A stretch of DNA of 64,000 nt, taken from the NCBI RefSeq assembly GCF_033153115.1, contig NW_026889757.1, positions 5,580,001-5,644,000 of the forward strand. Direction: 5' to 3'. Of this stretch, positions 1 to 48,227 are shown piece after piece. This DNA is from Saccostrea echinata. Lineage: Eukaryota. Under the pieces are notes generated by a model. That model was given only the letters and a program-made list of their open reading frames with translations, had not been told where the DNA came from and did not search any database. The first letter of the stretch is position 1. Each line of letters opens with the position of its first letter. The position numbers were made by a program, and so were the translations under genes.

Positions 1-2020
1 ACCTTTAAAATGTTTACATATACATTTTGTAAATATTGGTGTGCACCTTAAGCAATATAATATAATCCTCCTTTGTATACAATATTAACATTATATAGGT
101 TACAAAGTCTATGGCAACAAAAGGTCAAGGTCATAGGTCAAATACAACATGAAACTGACAACAGTGGATCACAACCTTTAGAAAAACCTCCCCATTGGAT
201 AAATCCCTCCTGATAAATTATAAAAGTGACATTTTCTGTTACAAAACCTTATTCTTGATTAAAAATGATAATTTAATCATATCATGATTTTGATATATGA
301 TTTTCTATAAAATACACGCAAAAAAGATATGCCAATATGCAATAGATATATATATATTTTAACACACGTTTGTAGAAAGCCTTTTTTTTTTAAAACTTGT
401 AGACTATATCAAAAATGTTGTGGGGGAAATGATACCCCATCACCAGAGAAAAAAATCTTGGTATAATTTATCCTGTTAAAGGCACACATTGTGGCATCCA
501 CTCCTAATGCCAGCTACACAATTACAACTTATCTCCAGTTTCAAAATAGCTTATGGGAATAAAATATGAACAAAATATTAAATGGTCATACCATACTCAG
601 AGGATTTTCAGCTAAAGCTACATATACAGAGCCACAGTGTGTGAATTTACCTCAAAAGAACAAGGGTGCATTTGATTGGCATTCAGCAGGAATCTGGGCA
701 TACTTGAAGTGAAATTTCATTGCTCTGTTATGTGAAATTTTAGCATTCTTTTGATGTATCTGGTTCCTGTGAAGTAGGAAAGGGAAATATTTTCCTGATA
801 TTGTGTTTAGATTCGCTAAAAAATAACTCGAAAATATGCTAGATGAGTCATTTTGGTACAAACTGTTACACTTTTAAACACATTTTTTTAAATATTTGCG
901 ATCTCTGGGTCATCTCTCCTTGATATTAAAACGTTGTTATTTATGTTAACTGTTACTGTTGTCGTACATGTAACTATTAAGACTTAAATATTACAATCTG
1001 ACAAGGTATATCATAGTAAATATATCATTTTCATAAGTGTGAAACTTTGTAAATGTATGTCCATCTGTAGTCAGCCAACCAAATCACGGATATTTAAACT
1101 ATAAATGTTTCATACACATGATTCCTGCAGATCACATGCCAAATACACCCATCTTCTATCAACAAAAGCCTGACTAACCTCCCATGCATATCTGAATGAA
1201 GTCAGAATAAATCTTCATATCTATTTGATTGTCTGTTCTGTCAGCAAGAATAATCAACAAAGATTCTTTTTCTTTTTTTTCTTCATTGGACATTATCATA
1301 ACAGATTTTAAATTTGAAAGACAGAAAGAGTATAGAAGGAGTTGAATTATCAATTCATAAGGTGTTTGTCTCATATGTAACATAAGGTTCTCCAAGAGTG
1401 ATAACTCTGGTATTAGATATTTCATCAATGAATTATAAATGTATGTTACAATGGAACTGAAAATTTCATTCTTAATTTCAATACAAACACTTAAACAAAG
1501 CTAAAACCAAAAGAATTAATGGTAGATGTATTTATCAGAGTTTAAAAAGAAATAATAATGTTATTTATTCTATTAATCAAATATTTTCAAATATTTCCAC
1601 ATACCGGTATATAAAGTTCTGCTTGCTGCTATACATTTATTACAAACATTTAAAAAATGGGGTAATTATTAATTCAAATAAACTTTGTAAACTCTAAATA
1701 CTATAATGTGAAATTATAAGAAAAAAATTACTGTTTGTACACCAATAGTGCATGATGTTCTTCACTAAAATTTTTTGGAAAAGGTTTGGTCTTATAAGCA
1801 GGAATTTTTTTTTCTCACAAATGTTGACCCTCACACAAACATGTAAACTAGACAGTACACATACCAGTTTATATGTCCCTTAGAAACAATGTGCATGATA
1901 CACAATAATATCACACTATAAGAACAGAAATTGACAACATCATACACACTGGATATATACAGGTAGATGATGGTTTTAGATGATGTCATATCCCCCAAAT
2001 GAACAGCTGATAGTCACAGA

Positions 2021-36060: not shown

Positions 36061-37184
36061 TCATTTATTTCGCTTACACCATGTCACTGGTACATGAGGT
36101 GCAATAATAAAAACAAGTAAAAATGATGCAAAGCATCAAATTGGCTGCAAAACAAATTTAGCATTTTAAAAAGTACTTTCACAAGTAAGCATTCAAGGAA
36201 AGCGCAAGTCATTTAAAGCTGAAAGAGAGAACATTTTTTTAGACTGTCTTCCATAAAAAGCAAAAATTGCAAGATAAATAGGAATGAAATTTCAGTGCAT
36301 TTTTTCATTAAGTTGATTCATCGATAATCAGTGATAAATGATAAGAATGTATTGTCATCAAGAAAGTGAACCACGCGCTGATACCCTGGATCTTTGTCAC
36401 GTGATCTGATGCCGATGGTTTCTGCAGACTATGCTTAACGGCGCGGAGATGGACAACACGATGCACTGTGTGGAAGAAAAATCATCCTTGTGTTATTCGA
36501 GCTGTAGCATATTCAAAACAATTTTTACTAGTTTTACCAACTTTTCAATTTTTATTCATCACTTTTTATCCGGAAAATCATAACGATTTATGAGGAGTAC
36601 CTATTGTAAACCCTTTTTATATAATCATAAATTAATAATGAGAAATCAAATTGAATTCAAAACATAATAACAACAATTAAGATTTAGTTCAAAAGAAGTT
36701 TTAAAAATATTTTGCTCAATTTTTATGCATGTTATGATAATATCATTAACGAATTATTTTACTTTACTGTTAAAGAAATAGCGTCTCATTTCCCCATGTG
36801 CACTTTCTAACACAACCACAAATAGACCGACCGCTCCAGCGGCCGATAATAAGTCGTCATGATTAATCGTGAAAATACAAGGGTATGCTACAACAACACA
36901 AGAGAGAGTGTACTACAAACTACAGCAACAAACAAGAAAAAGATACGGAAGGCCTTAAATGCCTTGTGTGAAAAATATTCATGGTTGCAATGACATTTCT
37001 TCATTATATGCTGATACTTCTTCATTATACGATTATACATGTGTGTCGAGATGAAACTTTGACATCATATGCTGATACTCACTCATTACTACTCATTATA
37101 TGTATCTGATGAAACATCTTTATGTAATGATACTTTCGTGTTGTCTTTCTTCTTTACATGAAGACTGCCATTTCGTGCTGCTAC

Positions 37185-39062
37185 TTCTTCATAATATGCC
37201 GATACTCCTTCATTATATGCTGAAACTCCTTCATTATATACTGATACTCCTTCATTATATGCTGATACTCCTTCATTATATGCTGATACTCCTTCATTAT
37301 TTGCTGATACTCCTTTCTTATATGCTGATACTCCTTCATTATATACTGATACTCCTTCACTATATGCTGATACTCCTTCACTATATGCTGACACTCCTTC
37401 ATTATATGCTGATACTCCTTCATTATATGCTGATACTACTTCATTATATGCTGATACTCCTTCTTTATATGCTGATACTCATTCTTTTATTATATGCTGA
37501 TACTACCTTATTATATGCTGATACTCCTTCATTATATGCTGATACTCCTTCATTATATGCTGATACTCCTCTTTTATTATATGCTGATACTCCTTCACTA
37601 TATGCTGATACTATCTTATTATATGCTGATACTCCTCCATTATATGCTGATACTCCTCTTTTATTATATGCTGATACTCCTTCATTATATGCTGATACTA
37701 CCTTATTATATGCTGATACTCCTTCATTATATGCTGATACTCCTCTTTTATTATATGCTGATACTCCTTCACTATATGCTGATACTACCCTATTATATGC
37801 TGATACTCCTTCACTATATGCTGATACTACTTCATTATATGCTGATACTCCTTCATTATATGCTGATACTACCTTATTATATGCTGATACTCCTTCACTA
37901 TATGCTGATACTACCTTATTATATGCTGATACTCCTTCACTATATGCTGATACTCCTTCATTATATGCTGATACTCCTTCATTATATACTGATACTCCTT
38001 CACTATATGCTGATACTACCTTATTATATGCTGATACTCCTTCACTATACGCTGATACTCCTTCATTATATGCTGATACTACCTTATTATATGCTGATAC
38101 TCCTTCATTATATGCTGATACTCCTTCATTATATGCTGATACTCCTTCATTATATACTGATACTCCTTCACTATATGCTGATACTACCTTATTATATGCT
38201 GATACTCCTTCATTATATGCTGATACTCCTTCATTATATGCTGATACTCCTTCATTATATACTGATACTCCTTCACTATATGCTGATACTACCTTATTAT
38301 ATGCTGATACTACTTCACTATATGCTGATACTCCTTCATTATATGCTGATACTCCTTCATTATATGCTGATACTCCTCCATTATATGCTGATACTCCTTC
38401 ATTATATGCTGATACTCCTTCACTATATGCTGATACTCCTTCTTTATATGCTGATACTACTTCACTATATGCTGATACTCCTTCATTATATGCTGATACT
38501 CCTTCATTATATGCTGATACTCCTTCATTATATGCTGATACTCCTTCTTTATATGCTGATACTCCTTCATTATATGCTGATACTCCTTCATTATATGCTG
38601 ATACTCCTTCATTATATGCTGATACTCCTCCATTATATGATAATACTCCTTCATTATATGCTGATACTCCTTCTTTATATGCTGATAGTCCTTCACTATA
38701 TGCTGATACTCCTTCATTATATGCTGATACTCCTTCATTATATGCTGATACTCCTTCATTATATGCTGATACTCCTTCATTATATGCTGATACTCCTTCA
38801 CTATATACTGATACTCCTTCATTATATGCTGATACTCCTTCATTATATGCTGATACTCCTTCATTATATACTGATACTCCTTCACTATATGCTGATACTC
38901 CTTCATTATATGCTGATACTCCTTCATTATATGCTGATACTCCTCCATTATATGCTGATACTCCTTCATTATATGCTGATACTCCTTCATTATATGATAA
39001 TACTCCTTCATTATATACTGATACTCCTCCATTATATGATATTACTCCTTCACTATATGATA
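37185..39062 (+). repeat. 21-bp minisatellite, about 90 copies
   Basis: Unit tatatgctgatactccttcat; generates the spurious long ORFs (YADTPSL, MLILLHY, GVSAYNE). Confidence 0.97.
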
Positions 39063-41724: not shown

Positions 41725-44700
41725 TTGAACATATTTTATTGACATAAACAAATGGATCGGAAACAAGTTCTTACAACTTACTGGTTCCTCTCCTTAAATA
41801 TAACAATTGTCATGCAAAGAAAAAAAAATTGCATAGAAATATTAATTTAACAAGTAACATGATTGAAAGTTCTGTTCAATAACATAGCAATTTAAAATCT
41901 ACAGGTTTCATCAATAAATTTATGGACAGCAGCAAATATTGTGTGATTAGTTTGTAGAGGCAAATCTGTGTCACCCCAAAGTAACAAATTTGTGTCAATA
42001 TTGACCAACTCGTCAAGCAAAAACAGGCGGTTAAAAAGCTTATTTCTAGCATTTGGATAATTTCTACATGCAAAAAAGAAATGATAAACATCTTCGTATT
42101 TACCACATGAACAAAAAGGATTATCGATAATATTTCGTTTATAAAGATCATAATTAAGTAAACAGTTGTGTCTTAGTTTGGTATGAATTATGTTTGTATA
42201 GCGTTTACCAAAAGAAAAATATGTTGGCGGATTGCTGACTTTTGTAATAGACCATAAGTTTTTACGGGATGAATTAATTGAGATGGCTTCTCTCGCTTCT
42301 ACTTTTAATAAATTCCACTGCTTCACAGCATCTGGTACAAAGGACCTTTTGTATACTTCTAATCTACATCGTGGGACAATAAACTGTTCTTTATTACGGG
42401 TATTATATTTTGATACATTTTCATGCGTGTTGGGGACAATATTACTCAAATACATAGGAACATCCCCTTTATGAATTTTGAACATAGTAGTCATTTTTGC
42501 AATATAGCGCCTGGATTTTAAAGTTTCCCACCCAGTTTCTAAATAAAGTGTTTCTGAAGATACAAAAATAGGAAGCCCTGTGACAATTCTAGCGGCAGCT
42601 AGTTGCACTTTTTCAAGCTTATCAGCATCGTGTTTAAAGCAGCCATCCCAAACAATAGAAGCGTATTCAAGCGTAGGTCTAATGAAGGTAGTGTACAATT
42701 TTGAAAGGTTACTTCTACTCAGTTTGTACTTAAGTTTTTTCAAAAGCCCAAGTTTCTTATAAGCATTGTTTACAATACCGTCAATATATGTAGACCAGCT
42801 GAGGTTTTGTGACAAAAGTAGACCTAAGTGTCGATGGACTGGAACACATTCCAGTCTGTCACCTTTAAAAAATAATTGAGGCGTAACAGAAGTAGTTTTC
42901 GTGTTGAAAAAAAATAACCTTAGTTTTAGATGGGTTAAATTTTAGAAGCCACTTATTTGACCATAATTCCAAAATATGTAAATCGTGGTTTAACTTATAT
43001 TCAATGTCTAAAATATTGTATGAGGATTGTTGAAGCGAATTGTCAACCGCAAATAATCTACACATTGACAACATATTTTCAGCCACATCGTTTACATAAA
43101 TCAGAAATAAAAGTGGCCCCAAGACAGAGCCCTGGGGTACACCTGCAAATATATCAAGTTTTGACGATAACAAATCCTTATACATAACTCTTTGTGACCT
43201 ATGACTTAAATAACTAGAGAACCACTGAAGGAGATCACCAAATATACCATAAGTTTGTAATTTAAAAATAAGACCTTTGTGCCACACCCTGTCAAAAGCT
43301 TTTGAAAGATCACAAAAAACCATACAACATGATTTACCTTCATCAATGTTTTGTACAATGTTATGATAGGTTTCTAGTAATTGGTACACAGTAGAATGAC
43401 CGGGTAGAAAACCGGCTTGATATCGATAAAACAGATTATTGCTATGGAAATAATTGTACACATGTTTAAAAATAATTCTTTCCATAATTTTACTAACACA
43501 AGATAATAGTGACACAGGTCTATAATTAGACACCAAAGAGGGATCATCCTTTTTAAAAAGAGGAATAACATGAGCTAATTTCCATAAAGATGGAAATGTT
43601 CTTTCTAATAAAGACCTATTAAACAACATAGTAAGTGGTTTGACAACAGAATGGCATGTAGATTTTAACATCTTATGGCTAACACAGTCAGGACCTATAG
43701 CTTTGTTCACTGGGAGTATTGAAATAATGTCTACTACTTCCTGTTCTTCAATTGTAATTTTACAAAATTTGTCACTACACAGACTATACATGTTTGGCAG
43801 TGTTTCATTTGAATCATCAATAGCTGAAATAGATGAAAAATAAGAATTTAAAGCTTCAGTCTTGTCAAAATCAGAATAAGCCAGCTTTTTTACACCGTTA
43901 TCATTATGTATTTGTATTGGTGGTAATTCGTTAGAGAGTTTAACGTTAAATGAATCCTTCATCAACTTCCAGTAGAGTTTGTTATTATTTTTACTTGAAT
44001 CATTTAAGTATGTTTCTATATTATCGTAATAATTCGCCATCGCATGTTTTTTCATATTGTTAACCGAGTTTCGTACCTTTCTATATGCGGACCAGTCAGA
44101 ATCTTTTTTTGTTTTAAGTGCTTTATTACGAAGACGGTTTCTGATTCTTATTGTTTTTCGTAATACTGAATCAAACCATGGTTTGTCACGAGGACGAATG
44201 GTTACTGTTTGTTCCGGTACACATTCACGAACACTGGTAAGAAATTCAGATGTGAAATTTTCTGTAGCCAGATCTATAGTATCAGCTTCATTGATGATTT
44301 TATTCCAGTTACAATTCTCAATTAAATAGTTTAGTTTTTCAAAGTCCGCATTTTTATAAACCCACACTTTTCTTTTATAAGAACGATTATAATTTATATT
44401 TGAAGAAAGCGAGATATAAGTAGCTCTATGATCACTTATGGACGACTCCATTATTAACGTGCCCGATTCGGTAACTTGAATATCAACAGAAGTGAGAATG
44501 GGGTCAAGAAGCGTGCTCGACGTGTTCGTAGTTCTTGTTGGTTCATGGATATTGTTAACTAAATTGTGTGTTGTGATCATTTCACGGATGATATGTGTTT
44601 GTGGAGCATTAAAGAAATCAACATTAATATCACCGACTAATACTATCTTATTCGAATGTTCACCTACTTTATCAATACACCATGAAAGTTTGGTCCAGAA

Positions 44701-45119
44701 ACTGCTCTCGGAGTTCGAAGGACGATATACACAGCATAAAAAATATTTACAGGTATGGTTATCTATTTCGATCCATATGCATTCAACGTCAGCTGGTTCA
44801 AATTCCTGGCGCCTAACAGCCCGTATTTTATTAGATAAGTAGATCATAACACCACCCCCAAAACAGTTTCTATCTTTTCGCAAAATATTACAAAACCCAT
44901 CGAAGTGTAAATCATCATTGTGTACGGTATGGTCAAGATGGGTTTCAGTAAAACATAGTATGTCGAAATCATGAACAAACGAGTTTAAATGACCTATTTT
45001 GTGTCTAATACTTCGGATATTGAGGTGTAAAATGTCAAGGACATTTTCAATATTAGGCCCCGGATTGACCTCGATATCGCCACATGCCAGTAGAACAAAC
45101 GTAAATAATTGTAAATAAA
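41725..45119 (-). mobile_element. 5'-truncated CR1-group LINE (APE endonuclease plus reverse transcriptase)
   Basis: HLNIRS, TETHL, GDINVD and SDH endonuclease motifs; YRPVSLLS, DLSKAFD, GVPQGSVLGPLLF RT motifs; 14-bp TSD AACGCTCATGTGTT (41711-41724, 45120-45133); 3' end aataaaatatgttcaa. Confidence 0.95.
41892..45117 (-). pseudogene. LINE ORF2 with one frameshift and a catalytic mutation
   Basis: ORFs 42865-44883 and 41892-42815 join if one base is removed from the A8 run at 42907-42914; the catalytic FADD motif reads FAVD at 43053-43042. Confidence 0.88.
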
Positions 45120-47484
45120 AACGCTCATGTGTTGTGTATGGTCAGCAAATAATCATAATAATGCGTGATAGGGAGCATAAATTTTATCAAGGGCAGGTAA
45201 TTGGATTACATTTACATACCAGGAATCAATGGTGTGTGTGTGTGTAGGGAGGGGGGGGGGGTGACCCTTTCTCTTTGAATGCCCTTTAAACTCACCTCTC
45301 AAGGTTAAGTATGATCTTCGTTTAAAATCCCTTTCCTTTATCAAGTAATGTATACTTCTCAGGATTCACAATAACAGATGAACGTCCCTGCAAATTAATT
45401 AGATGTCAAAGTACTAAAAGACTACAAATATTTTATCGTCTACCGCTTTGCATGGCCGCATTGTACTCAGACGATTACTAACGATAGGAAACAATCCTGC
45501 ATTTCATAAATGAAAAGCATTAAAGATCTTTAATGTATTTAACAATCTTTTTTTTTCAGATTTTATAAAAAGAAATGTATAAATACCTCCTGTTTCCTTC
45601 CTAGATATGGTGTTTCTTGGCAGTATATGCGCGATTCTGCATCTTCTGCGTTCAAATGGCATGTTACGACATAATCAATTGCGTCATTTTCTATCATAAC
45701 GTATTAAACACGGGTGTTTAATTTGCAATTTCTATATAAATACCATGTGTTTAATTTATAAATAGGCCTATATGATGGTTAAGAAATGAACACTCGTGTT
45801 AAACACCGGTGATTAAAATATTGATAAAATTATAAAAATCATCATAATATATGTTTCTTTTTCCCCTTTAACAGTTTATGAAAATTATGATTTTTTGGTA
45901 CAAAATTACTATAAATTAATGTTAATTGTTAATGTTAATTGTAATTGCTATTGGTATGATCTAAAGTCAACATATTGCCTGGCTATTCGTATTTTTTTAT
46001 GTGTCGAAAAATATCTTCTATGTGCGGATTTACTTCATAAATTAAGAAATTATACAAATGGCAAATGCACACAGCAATACTGAGAAGCAACACCTAATTT
46101 ATTTTTTGATTTGATGCCTATGAACTTTACGAGTTTAAGATGGATGATTAAACACCATACTAATTGAACACCAGTTGAAATAGCAGTGTTTATTTATAAA
46201 ACGCTAATGTTTTGTATTTAAACCCACTATGTTTAATTGTAAAACACGACTGTTTAAAAATTAAACACACGTTAAACATCATTTTTTACAGTAAATCAAA
46301 AAACACCAATGTTTTTCTTGTTCCGCACATACAAATTTGTGTTGTGAAGACAGGGAGGAGATGAAATCTATAATTAAAGATTGATTTAATAAGGATGTTC
46401 ACCTAGTGTTGACCAGCGTCTTTTGTGCTGTTTTGATGGGAATTTCGAAAATGGATCGCTAAATAACCAAATATGCTATCAATGTTATGCAATCTAAATT
46501 GTGGTAGTAAAGATACCAAAAATGTTTGTTTTAGCTTCCAATACTCGAATTTCAATAGAAAGTTTAACATATTCCAGCAGTCCTCTTTTTGTTATTCAAT
46601 GTGAAATCAACATTGGTATGAAAATTTCAAGAACGAGTTTTCATTAAATGATTCATCTAACCAGAAGCATCTGACGTTATGACGTCAGACAATGATCTCC
46701 ATCAAATCTAATTCATAAGATATTGTCCTAAAGCAACAAATAATTCATGTGAGCATTCTAACTGAGTCCTTCCTCAAGTAAACGTCGCAGGTGGACTTTG
46801 TGAACAAAACACATTGAGACTGAAGATTTATTTTCAGTATTTATTATATACCAGAAGCTGGGAATTGTGCCATTGCAATTTATTATGAGTATTACAAGTC
46901 AGAATTGGGAAAGCTGCTTGTGGGCTTAGATAGAGGTATTGCTTCAAAAAGAAGGCATCAACGATTGTTTTTCAAAGAAATACAATGTTTAATGTTTCTT
47001 TTATTTATTTTGATTTCAAATTCGCCAAACATATATTTTGTAGATGTACAAAAAAAAATCAATGTTTAGGAAAATTATCTCGTTTTAATTCTCATCATCT
47101 TAAATAAGATTACTTTTAATGCATGATCATTTAAAAAAAAATAGAATTCTACTACAAAAATATTTGGTGCGTAAATTTTACAGAAAAGACAGATATCAGT
47201 TTATTTCTAGTCTTAAACACATTTGGTCAATCAAAATAGAAATTATTCACAAGAAATAATATCTTTGCAAAGTTAAGAAAACTAGCATTTATTCTACAAA
47301 ATATGAAAGCCTGATTTTGGTCGGTGAAAATGTCCATATTTATCCAAACATATCGCCTTTCATTAATCCATTTCACATCGGTCCCAGTTCCATCATTTAT
47401 TTGTAAATCAACATTTACAATTCAAAATGTAGACTCATTGTCAAAGAAAATCATCAAAAGCAATATTTCAGTTTTTCCATCGAA

Positions 47485-47982
47485 TCACCATCCACTAGCC
47501 TGGAATTTTCGCCTTTTCTTAACCTTCAGAATTTGTTGGATTATTTTCATAATTTCCTCTCTGGACAATTTGTTTGAAGTATCGCGCTTTTTACGTTTCC
47601 AGCCACTCGAGTTAAATCTGTAAGTACCTTGTCTTTTTTGCTCTTTGTTCACCAACATTTGATTTCTAATCTGCATGAGGAACGCAACACATTCATCCAA
47701 GCTATCATCGTCGCCGGTATTCCACAAAATTCGACAAAAAGTCATAGGCTTTTGTTCGACCATAGTACCGAGAAGCAAGATCAAGTCATCTGTGTTTGAA
47801 CGAGGTTCTCCCAAAATTCCGGCGCTTTTGGCGAGTTCCTTCTTGAACAGTTCGTTGGATACTCTTGATAAAATTTCTCCAAATTTGTTGTCATTCTGTG
47901 TACCCCATTTAGGAAAATCTTCCAGAGAAAGCGCCAAGCCTGTACAGATCCAGAAAAACACAGCAAACAGCATTTTCTCCAT
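47485..47982 (-). CDS. Putative neuropeptide/peptide-hormone precursor, 165 aa, single coding exon
   Basis: Acceptor taacag|tcATG; signal peptide MEKMLFAVFFWICTGLALS; Cys pair; KR-QGTYRFNSSGW-KRKKR and KKRR-KFQASGW-stop. Confidence 0.8.
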   Translation of the reverse strand: MEKMLFAVFFWICTGLALSLEDFPKWGTQNDNKFGEILSRVSNELFKKELAKSAGILGEPRSNTDDLILLLGTMVEQKPMTFCRILWNTGDDDSLDECVAFLMQIRNQMLVNKEQKRQGTYRFNSSGWKRKKRDTSNKLSREEIMKIIQQILKVKKRRKFQASGW

Positions 47983-48100
47983 GACTGTTAAAATAAAATG
48001 AAAAAAAAAGTTGTAGAAGCAGAACAATTGGTGTCGGAATCAAATATTTTTTTAAGAGAGAGAGAGATAACTTACTGCCTGTAAAGACATATATGTTTAC

Positions 48101-48227
48101 CTGTTGGGTTTGCTATATACTTGAACCTTATGGAGTCCCACGCTACGAAATAATAAAGATTTTTCAGCTCCTTGTTCAGATTTATCGAAATAATAAATTC
48201 CATAAGCTGCAGGTGTAATTTTTATAG
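48101..48227 (-). promoter_or_regulatory. TATA box and non-coding first exon of the precursor gene
   Basis: Minus-strand CTATAAAAA at 48227-48219; donor CAG|GTAAAC at 48100 (alternative GTAAGT at 48075). Confidence 0.6.

Follow-up and report, generated by a model that had tools for sequence, protein, structure and literature searches.

What does the open reading frame (ORF) on the minus strand at 47485-47982 of this stretch of the Saccostrea echinata genome encode, and does its product belong to any known family of secreted proteins? The stretch analysed, hereafter the window, comprises 64,000 nucleotides (nt) of contig NW_026889757.1 (positions 5,580,001 to 5,644,000), and a first-pass annotation made from its letters alone had described the ORF as an unnamed neuropeptide-precursor-like gene releasing two F-x-x-S-G-W peptides. 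We find that the gene is spliced and transcribed, and that, judged from its sequence and those of its orthologues, it is a plausible oyster-restricted peptide precursor, a candidate peptide hormone or neuropeptide. In the interpretation that we favour and consider moderately likely, a single-copy, two-exon oyster gene specifies a 165-residue precursor that enters the secretory pathway, and short peptides cut from it would act as extracellular signals.

The structure of the gene is documented by transcript contigs from public sequencing runs. One contig of 715 nt (X1) spans 48180..48101 and 47984..47350 with the intron spliced out, and the non-coding first exon and the intron proposed by the first-pass annotation are thereby observed rather than merely predicted. 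Contigs from three more runs of another study (X2-X4) cover parts of exon 2 at an identity of at least 99%. The 5' end of X1 at 48180 lies 40-46 nt downstream of the TATAAAA element, and the true start of exon 1 is possibly located slightly upstream of it. The 3' ends of the contigs, at 47350 in X1 and at 47383 in X2, define an observed extent, not a mapped 3' end. In a six-frame search of the 923-Mb assembly of the species the gene was found as a single copy, and no paralogue was detected.

The observed part of exon 1 (48180..48101) is free of ATG codons by sequence reading. An in-frame ATG at 48203 on the minus strand, connected to the main ORF through exon 1 without an intervening stop, would add 36 residues; it is an unlikely start, since only 23 nt separate it from the beginning of the TATA box and the observed transcript begins downstream of it. 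Because the contig starts at 48180, and because the N-terminal extensions of some predicted orthologues (including Crassostrea virginica XP_078311150.1) are not homologous to one another, this upstream ATG is probably not used. The latter C. virginica RefSeq model (223 residues) has a 57-residue N-terminal extension that itself resembles a signal peptide (MRSVPALLTVLVAVTSSG...) and is absent from the other C. virginica-type sequences (164-167 residues); it may reflect an error of annotation or the use of a different first exon. Two antisense ORFs at 47324-47623 and 47675-48001, which lack comparable transcript or orthologue support, were taken as chance occurrences.

The elements of the precursor listed by the first-pass annotation, namely the ORF and its coordinates, both peptides and their flanking basic sites, the missing Gly, the Cys pair and the TATA box, were all confirmed in the sequence (Table 1). 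The signal region consists of MEK followed by a 14-residue hydrophobic core (residues 5-18, mean Eisenberg value 0.86), and in the orthologue alignment its predicted cleavage site is preceded by Ala or Val at position -3 and by the invariant Ser19 at position -1. The pro-region that follows contains Cys83 (47736-47734) and Cys98 (47691-47689), within FCRILWNTGDDDSLDEC, both of which are invariant in 18 orthologous sequences. The consensus of the first predicted peptide is Q[GS][ST]Y[RK]FNSSGW, with 8 of 11 columns invariant, and that of the second is [KQ]FQA[ST]GW. In C. virginica and one further oyster the latter reads QFQATGW, with Gln at residue 159, and both predicted peptides of these species start with Gln after a basic site. 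Neither Trp is followed by a Gly residue in any of the 18 sequences: W128 runs directly into KRKKR and W165 into the stop codon.

The relatedness of the two peptides, also pointed out in the first-pass annotation, exceeds what chance would produce. No other pair of 7-mers in the mature protein scores as high as RFNSSGW (122-128) and KFQASGW (159-165), with a BLOSUM62 score of 30; this value was attained in 20 of 5000 shuffles, and in only 1 of 5000 when the second copy was also C-terminal. The internal repeat follows the pattern [RK]F[NQ][SA]SGW within the protein and [RK]F[NQ][SA][ST]GW across the orthologues. In every orthologue the first copy of the motif ends at the multibasic R-K-K-R site and the second one at the stop codon, and these fixed ends fit selection for a free -GW carboxyl end.

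The proposed processing scheme is as follows. Residues 1-19 would direct the protein into the endoplasmic reticulum and then be removed, and a disulfide bond between Cys83 and Cys98 would form within the acidic pro-region. Subtilisin-like proprotein convertases would cut after KR117, RKKR133 and KKRR158, and the basic residues would be trimmed by a carboxypeptidase E-type enzyme. The N-terminal Gln of peptide 1 would be converted to pyroglutamate, and the same would happen to peptide 2 wherever it begins with Gln. The expected products are two short peptides ending in a free, non-amidated Trp, pQGTYRFNSSGW and (K)FQASGW, together with a 21-residue connecting peptide and an N-terminal fragment of about 96 residues. 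For the Saccostrea sequence, the calculated neutral monoisotopic masses are 1284.552 for pQGTYRFNSSGW (1301.579 without the modification), 822.402 for KFQASGW, 694.307 for FQASGW and 2485.394 for the connecting peptide. The two short peptides would most likely serve as extracellular signals, either as neuropeptides or as peptide hormones, acting on one receptor type.

A word-based protein search identified eight relatives, all from oysters, with 62-89% identity over the full length. The named orthologues are LOC134253793 in Saccostrea cucullata (89% identity), LOC105344226 / A0A8W8IP09 in Crassostrea (Magallana) gigas, LOC128181435 in C. angulata and LOC111100812 in C. virginica, all four of which are annotated as "uncharacterized protein"; the other relatives are predictions from public assemblies (Logan, ENA). 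The FxxSGW motifs, whose loss in orthologues the first-pass annotation had named as grounds for abandoning its reading, are kept in 18 sequences, with Ser or Thr at one position of peptide 2, and the prohormone-like architecture that it recognized proved to be real and conserved across oyster genera. The distribution of invariant columns along the alignment (Table 1) combines fixed predicted cleavage sites and peptides with a hypervariable, indel-bearing spacer, which is the usual pattern of a prohormone. Together with a signal peptide recognized by inspection, the conserved basic sites around short conserved peptides and the variable spacers provide the generic layout of a neuropeptide or peptide-hormone precursor.

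Outside the cluster of the oyster family, a HMMER profile of nine oyster sequences had zero matches among 1.84 billion representative proteins. A word search with residues 108-165 only, at an expectation value (E) ≤ 10, also retrieved nothing but oysters. Scanning the protein and all 18 aligned members against Pfam yielded only sub-threshold and inconsistent matches to Laminin_B, DEC-1_N and YqeY, which we regard as noise, and a profile search of the PDB sequences gave no match at E ≤ 10. As far as sequence methods reach, the family appears to be confined to true oysters (Ostreidae); since short, fast-evolving precursors can evade detection, this range should be read as a lower bound.

The inability of the first-pass annotation to assign the gene to a named family is shared by every resource that we consulted: Pfam, the PDB sequences, the profile search and five mollusc neuropeptide catalogues. 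The motifs are absent from the texts and text-readable supplements of the latter (Stewart 2014, Réalis-Doyelle 2021, Zafar 2025, Zhang 2018 and De Oliveira 2019, with 1.25 million characters searched in the supplements of the last), subscription papers being outside this search. A full-text literature search with the motif strings and the gene and protein identifiers returned no relevant paper. The nearest neighbours of both the whole protein and residues 20-115 in a protein language model are all neuropeptide precursors; they come from unrelated families (NMU/NMS, FARP, neurotensin, NPS, CCK and QRFP), and their scores of 0.80-0.89 are to be treated as a lead only. No competing fold or family was recognizable in Pfam, in the PDB profile search or in an AlphaFold2 model of low confidence.

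Table 1. Features of the precursor gene in the window and of two canonical peptide genes elsewhere in the same genome. Conservation is the share of invariant alignment columns in seven non-redundant orthologues
Feature	Position	Strand	Residues	Invariant columns	Remarks
TATAAAA box-like element	48220..48226	minus			Sequence reading; putative promoter role
Non-coding exon 1, observed part	48101..48180	minus			Letters 1-80 of contig X1 from a public run
Intron	47985..48100	minus			116 nt, GT..AG; joint 47984/48101 in contig X1
Exon 2, observed extent	47350..47984	minus			2 nt leader, whole coding sequence and 3' untranslated region; letters 81-715 of contig X1
Coding sequence	47485..47982	minus	1-165		165 codons and TGA, wholly in exon 2
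Predicted signal peptide	47926..47982	minus	1-19	42%	MEKMLFAVFFWICTGLALS; recognized by inspection
N-terminal pro-region	47638..47925	minus	20-115		Acidic, net charge -5; invariant FPKWG..QN start
Start of pro-region			20-37	50%	
Middle of pro-region			38-78	17%	
Cys region			79-113	57%	
EQKR			114-117	100%	
Dibasic site K116-R117	47632..47637	minus	116-117		Invariant
Predicted peptide 1, QGTYRFNSSGW	47599..47631	minus	118-128	73%	Between KR and KRKKR; N-terminal Gln, free C-terminal Trp
Multibasic site [KR]RKKR	47584..47598	minus	129-133	80%	R-x-K-R furin/convertase-type; R130-K131-K132-R133 invariant
Connecting peptide	47521..47583	minus	134-154		Hypervariable acidic start, then conserved helix-prone LSREEIMKIIQQILKV
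Start of connecting peptide			134-138	0% (0/5)	Indels of up to 9 residues
Rest of connecting peptide			139-154	62% (10/16)	
Multibasic site K155-K156-R157-R158	47509..47520	minus	155-158	100%	Invariant
Predicted peptide 2, KFQASGW	47488..47508	minus	159-165	71%	After KKRR; TGA directly behind
AATAAA polyadenylation-signal-like hexamer	47396..47401	minus			3' untranslated region; sequence reading
Canonical GnRH/corazonin-type first coding exon	C10:2626092-2629118, ORF 1339-1599	minus			Followed by an apparent intron
Canonical FCAP precursor	C54:47369049-47372081, ORF 1258-2361	minus			About 17 tandem xLxSLGGxxLHxx peptides with KR between them

Several observations weigh against the interpretation of the gene as a peptide precursor. 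The motifs are absent from the texts and searchable supplements of two peptidomic/transcriptomic surveys of C. gigas ganglia, though this species has the gene; the absence could be explained by low or non-neural expression, or by the precursor not being part of the search set of the surveys. Most neuropeptides of molluscs carry a C-terminal amide, which is missing from both of these peptides, and peptide 1 contains an invariant N-glycosylation sequon (N124-S-S), an unusual feature in so small a neuropeptide. The signal peptide as well as the cleavages are predicted, and the sequencing runs that contain the transcript carry no tissue label. Finally, conservation in the Cys region and in the connecting helix comes close to that of the peptides themselves, and therefore conservation within oysters alone cannot single out the active part of the protein.

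In two alternative readings, other parts of the protein would be active. In the first of them, which we judge fairly unlikely, the strongly cationic C-terminal third would act intact or after a single cut, as an antimicrobial peptide or as a matrix- or glycan-binding tail released from an anionic pro-region, and the basic clusters would provide charge instead of sites for the liberation of small signalling peptides. This proposal is consistent with the split in charge between residues 20-115 (net -5) and residues 116-165 (net +14), with the helix-prone hydrophobic and basic segment 139-158, with the restriction to a single lineage, which is typical of immune effectors, and with transcription evidence that is not tied to neurons. 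However, the hydrophobic moment of the tail (0.53) is unremarkable, being equalled in 299 of 2000 shuffles, and an antimicrobial helix was rejected on the ground that the amphipathicity does not rise above that of the shuffled sequences. Furthermore, charge alone leaves unexplained why the basic clusters adjoin a duplicated heptapeptide at invariant positions and why the stop codon invariably comes right after GW, and the stretch behind KRKKR is acidic, variable and indel-prone, as would be expected of a spacer.

In the second reading, the N-terminal domain of about 96 residues, closed by a Cys83-Cys98 disulfide, would be the active product, either a small protein hormone or a binding protein, and the C-terminal peptides would be by-products or sorting elements. 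The invariant FPKWG-x-QN start directly behind the predicted signal cleavage site, the 57% of invariant columns around the two Cys residues (79-113) and the helices predicted through residues 33-117 argue for such a domain. Nevertheless, the AlphaFold2 model that contains these helices, built from a nine-sequence alignment, reaches a mean predicted local distance difference test (pLDDT) value of only 53.6 with no residue above 70, conservation falls to 17% at residues 38-78, and a duplicated motif that ends once at a cleavage site and once at the stop codon is not accounted for. We consider this proposal quite improbable.

The third alternative is a special case of the peptide-precursor interpretation, in which a paralogue from the GnRH/corazonin/AKH superfamily would have diverged and been relocated to give this gene. 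Its peptide 1 would then descend from a QNYHFSNGW-type ancestor that lost the Gly donor and would act on a receptor of the GnRH/CRZ/AKH type. The gene itself is not the GnRH-like gene of this genome, since the canonical one resides on another contig (C10), where the only exact genome match to a degenerate DNA pattern for QNYHFSNGW was found. There, MKASPCTQVIVMFLTFGFLCEVHA-QNYHFSNGWQPG-KR-SYKPC... provides in turn a signal peptide, the peptide, a Gly donor, a dibasic site and an associated peptide. An identification of the window gene as a GnRH/corazonin-type gene is also rejected for its layout and lack of an amidation signal: in that family the peptide adjoins the signal peptide and is amidated (...GWQPG-KR in the canonical gene), whereas a pro-region of about 96 residues precedes peptide 1, whose first residue is 118 and which has no Gly behind it.

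The first-pass annotation had noted a loose echo of QNYHFSNGW, and as a resemblance between peptides this observation stands. In a local alignment of the mature protein with the QNYHFSNGW of the genome itself, the pairing of YRFNSSGW with YHF-SNGW attains a score reached in 13 of 5000 protein shuffles, and 27 of 20000 shuffles that preserve composition reach the global score between the two peptides. In both peptides the initial Gln adjoins a processing site (Q118 behind KR in our case), and they share an aromatic...G-W core. The comparison, however, was picked post hoc among dozens of known peptide families, and a p of about 0.003 is not compelling under these circumstances. The resemblance does not extend to the precursors: BLASTP of the two remains empty at E ≤ 100, neither the GnRH nor the AKH family of Pfam is matched at E ≤ 10, and a peptide placed away from the signal peptide, without a Gly donor and in two copies is the reverse of the defining layout of the family. 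We therefore regard common descent with these hormones as distinctly unlikely. A further conjecture, to which we give equally little credence, envisages a private oyster system with free -SGW ligands, perhaps derived from a GnRH/corazonin-type gene that lost its amidation donor and whose peptide was moved to the C-terminal part of the precursor and duplicated. If true, it would constitute a third, non-amidated ligand lineage of the GnRH/corazonin superfamily in a lophotrochozoan, with a receptor of its own or a shared one.

It is highly improbable that the protein would be a secretory-granule helper like proSAAS or 7B2, in which I-L-K-V-K-K(RR), by mimicking the proSAAS hexapeptide L-L-R-V-K-R, would bind a prohormone convertase or inhibit it: like proSAAS, the protein is small and secreted and has several convertase sites, and its invariant ILKVKK (151-156) follows the hydrophobic-hydrophobic-basic-Val-Lys-basic pattern of the proSAAS-derived PC1/3 inhibitor Ac-LLRVKR-NH2 (PMC3467282), but the likeness covers six residues only, no family-level match exists (no Pfam ProSAAS or 7B2 match at E ≤ 10 among the 18 members), and the duplicated -SGW motif is left without an explanation.

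In the window, the precursor gene stands alone in its neighbourhood. About 2.5 kilobases (kb) beyond its 3' end lies a reverse-transcriptase ORF of 672 residues (42868-44883, minus strand; RVT_1, E 1.1e-28), followed downstream by an adjacent ORF of 307 residues without a Pfam match (41895-42815, minus strand); the whole segment 41892-44883 (minus strand) looks like an element without long terminal repeats, of the long interspersed nuclear element (LINE) type, that is split by a frame change. At 37176-39059 a 21-bp unit (TGCTGATACTCCTTCATTATA) is repeated about 89 times with 90% matches, forming a minisatellite that yields long artificial ORFs in several frames. No transfer RNA genes were found within 46-52 kb of the window. 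A run of N at about 61.8-62.0 kb, visible as X in the ORFs 61726-62148 and 61752-62036, represents an assembly gap or a masked stretch.

The neuropeptide repertoire is one of the routes by which the reproduction, feeding and stress physiology of oysters are studied, and the published catalogues are mostly based on homology, which causes lineage-restricted precursors to be missed. The gene described here is present in the commercially important C. gigas and C. virginica and in the Saccostrea rock oysters, where it is annotated only as uncharacterized despite a clean and conserved prohormone layout. Invertebrate genomes contain many orphan candidate precursors, among which this gene is unusually clean. 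The generic prohormone layout is already known; what appears to be new is an oyster-only precursor without a name. If its peptides exist, there is a ligand specific to oysters, together with its orphan receptor, to seek, as well as a concrete case for studying whether new peptide hormones originate de novo or from a GnRH-type gene that was remodelled. Even without the peptides, the gene still encodes a conserved secreted oyster protein. The hypothesis of an undescribed peptide signalling system would, if true, apply to true oysters alone, as far as sequence searches can see.

Comparison with known peptide systems helps to place the candidate precursor. With mollusc GnRH/corazonin and AKH/RPCH it shares the N-terminal Gln at a processing site and the Y-basic-F-(S/N)(N/S)-G-W core. 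In contrast to the canonical GnRH-like gene, which has a single peptide directly behind the signal peptide followed by a Gly donor and an associated peptide, it places the corresponding peptide about 98 residues past the signal cleavage site and adds a shorter second copy. The FCAP peptides, represented by ALDSLGGFQVHGW in Aplysia and by a multi-copy precursor with GLNSLGGFSLHGY-type peptides in C. gigas (PMC4200219 supplement), resemble the predicted products in being short and non-amidated, with a free C-terminal aromatic residue next to KR-type sites (GW-KRKKR and GW-stop in our precursor), and FQVHGW, with which Aplysia FCAP ends, has F, Q, G and W in common with FQASGW. Nevertheless, FCAP precursors contain 6-28 tandem copies of about 13 residues each (PMC6425005), whereas the oyster precursor has two copies of 11 and 7 residues, and it lacks the L-x-S-L-G-G core and the His before the C-terminal aromatic residue that are present in Aplysia, in C. 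gigas and in the canonical FCAP of this genome. The sole BLASTP alignment between the latter and the window precursor is FNSSGWKR/FSLHGYKR, of the form FxxxG[WY]KR, with an E of 6.6; given this value and the location of the canonical gene on contig C54, an identity with FCAP was rejected.

The closest analogy in layout is offered by vertebrate pro-neurotensin/neuromedin N. This precursor has a long pro-region and, near its C-terminus, two related non-amidated peptides with basic sites around both. The oyster protein is unlike it in sequence (PF07421 is unmatched at E ≤ 10), in the C-terminal motif shared by its peptides, which is -SGW, and in its furin-like multibasic sites, so that the analogy concerns only how the precursor would work. 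It extends to the peptides themselves: in both precursors the longer peptide starts with Gln, or pyroglutamate, and the shorter one starts with Lys.

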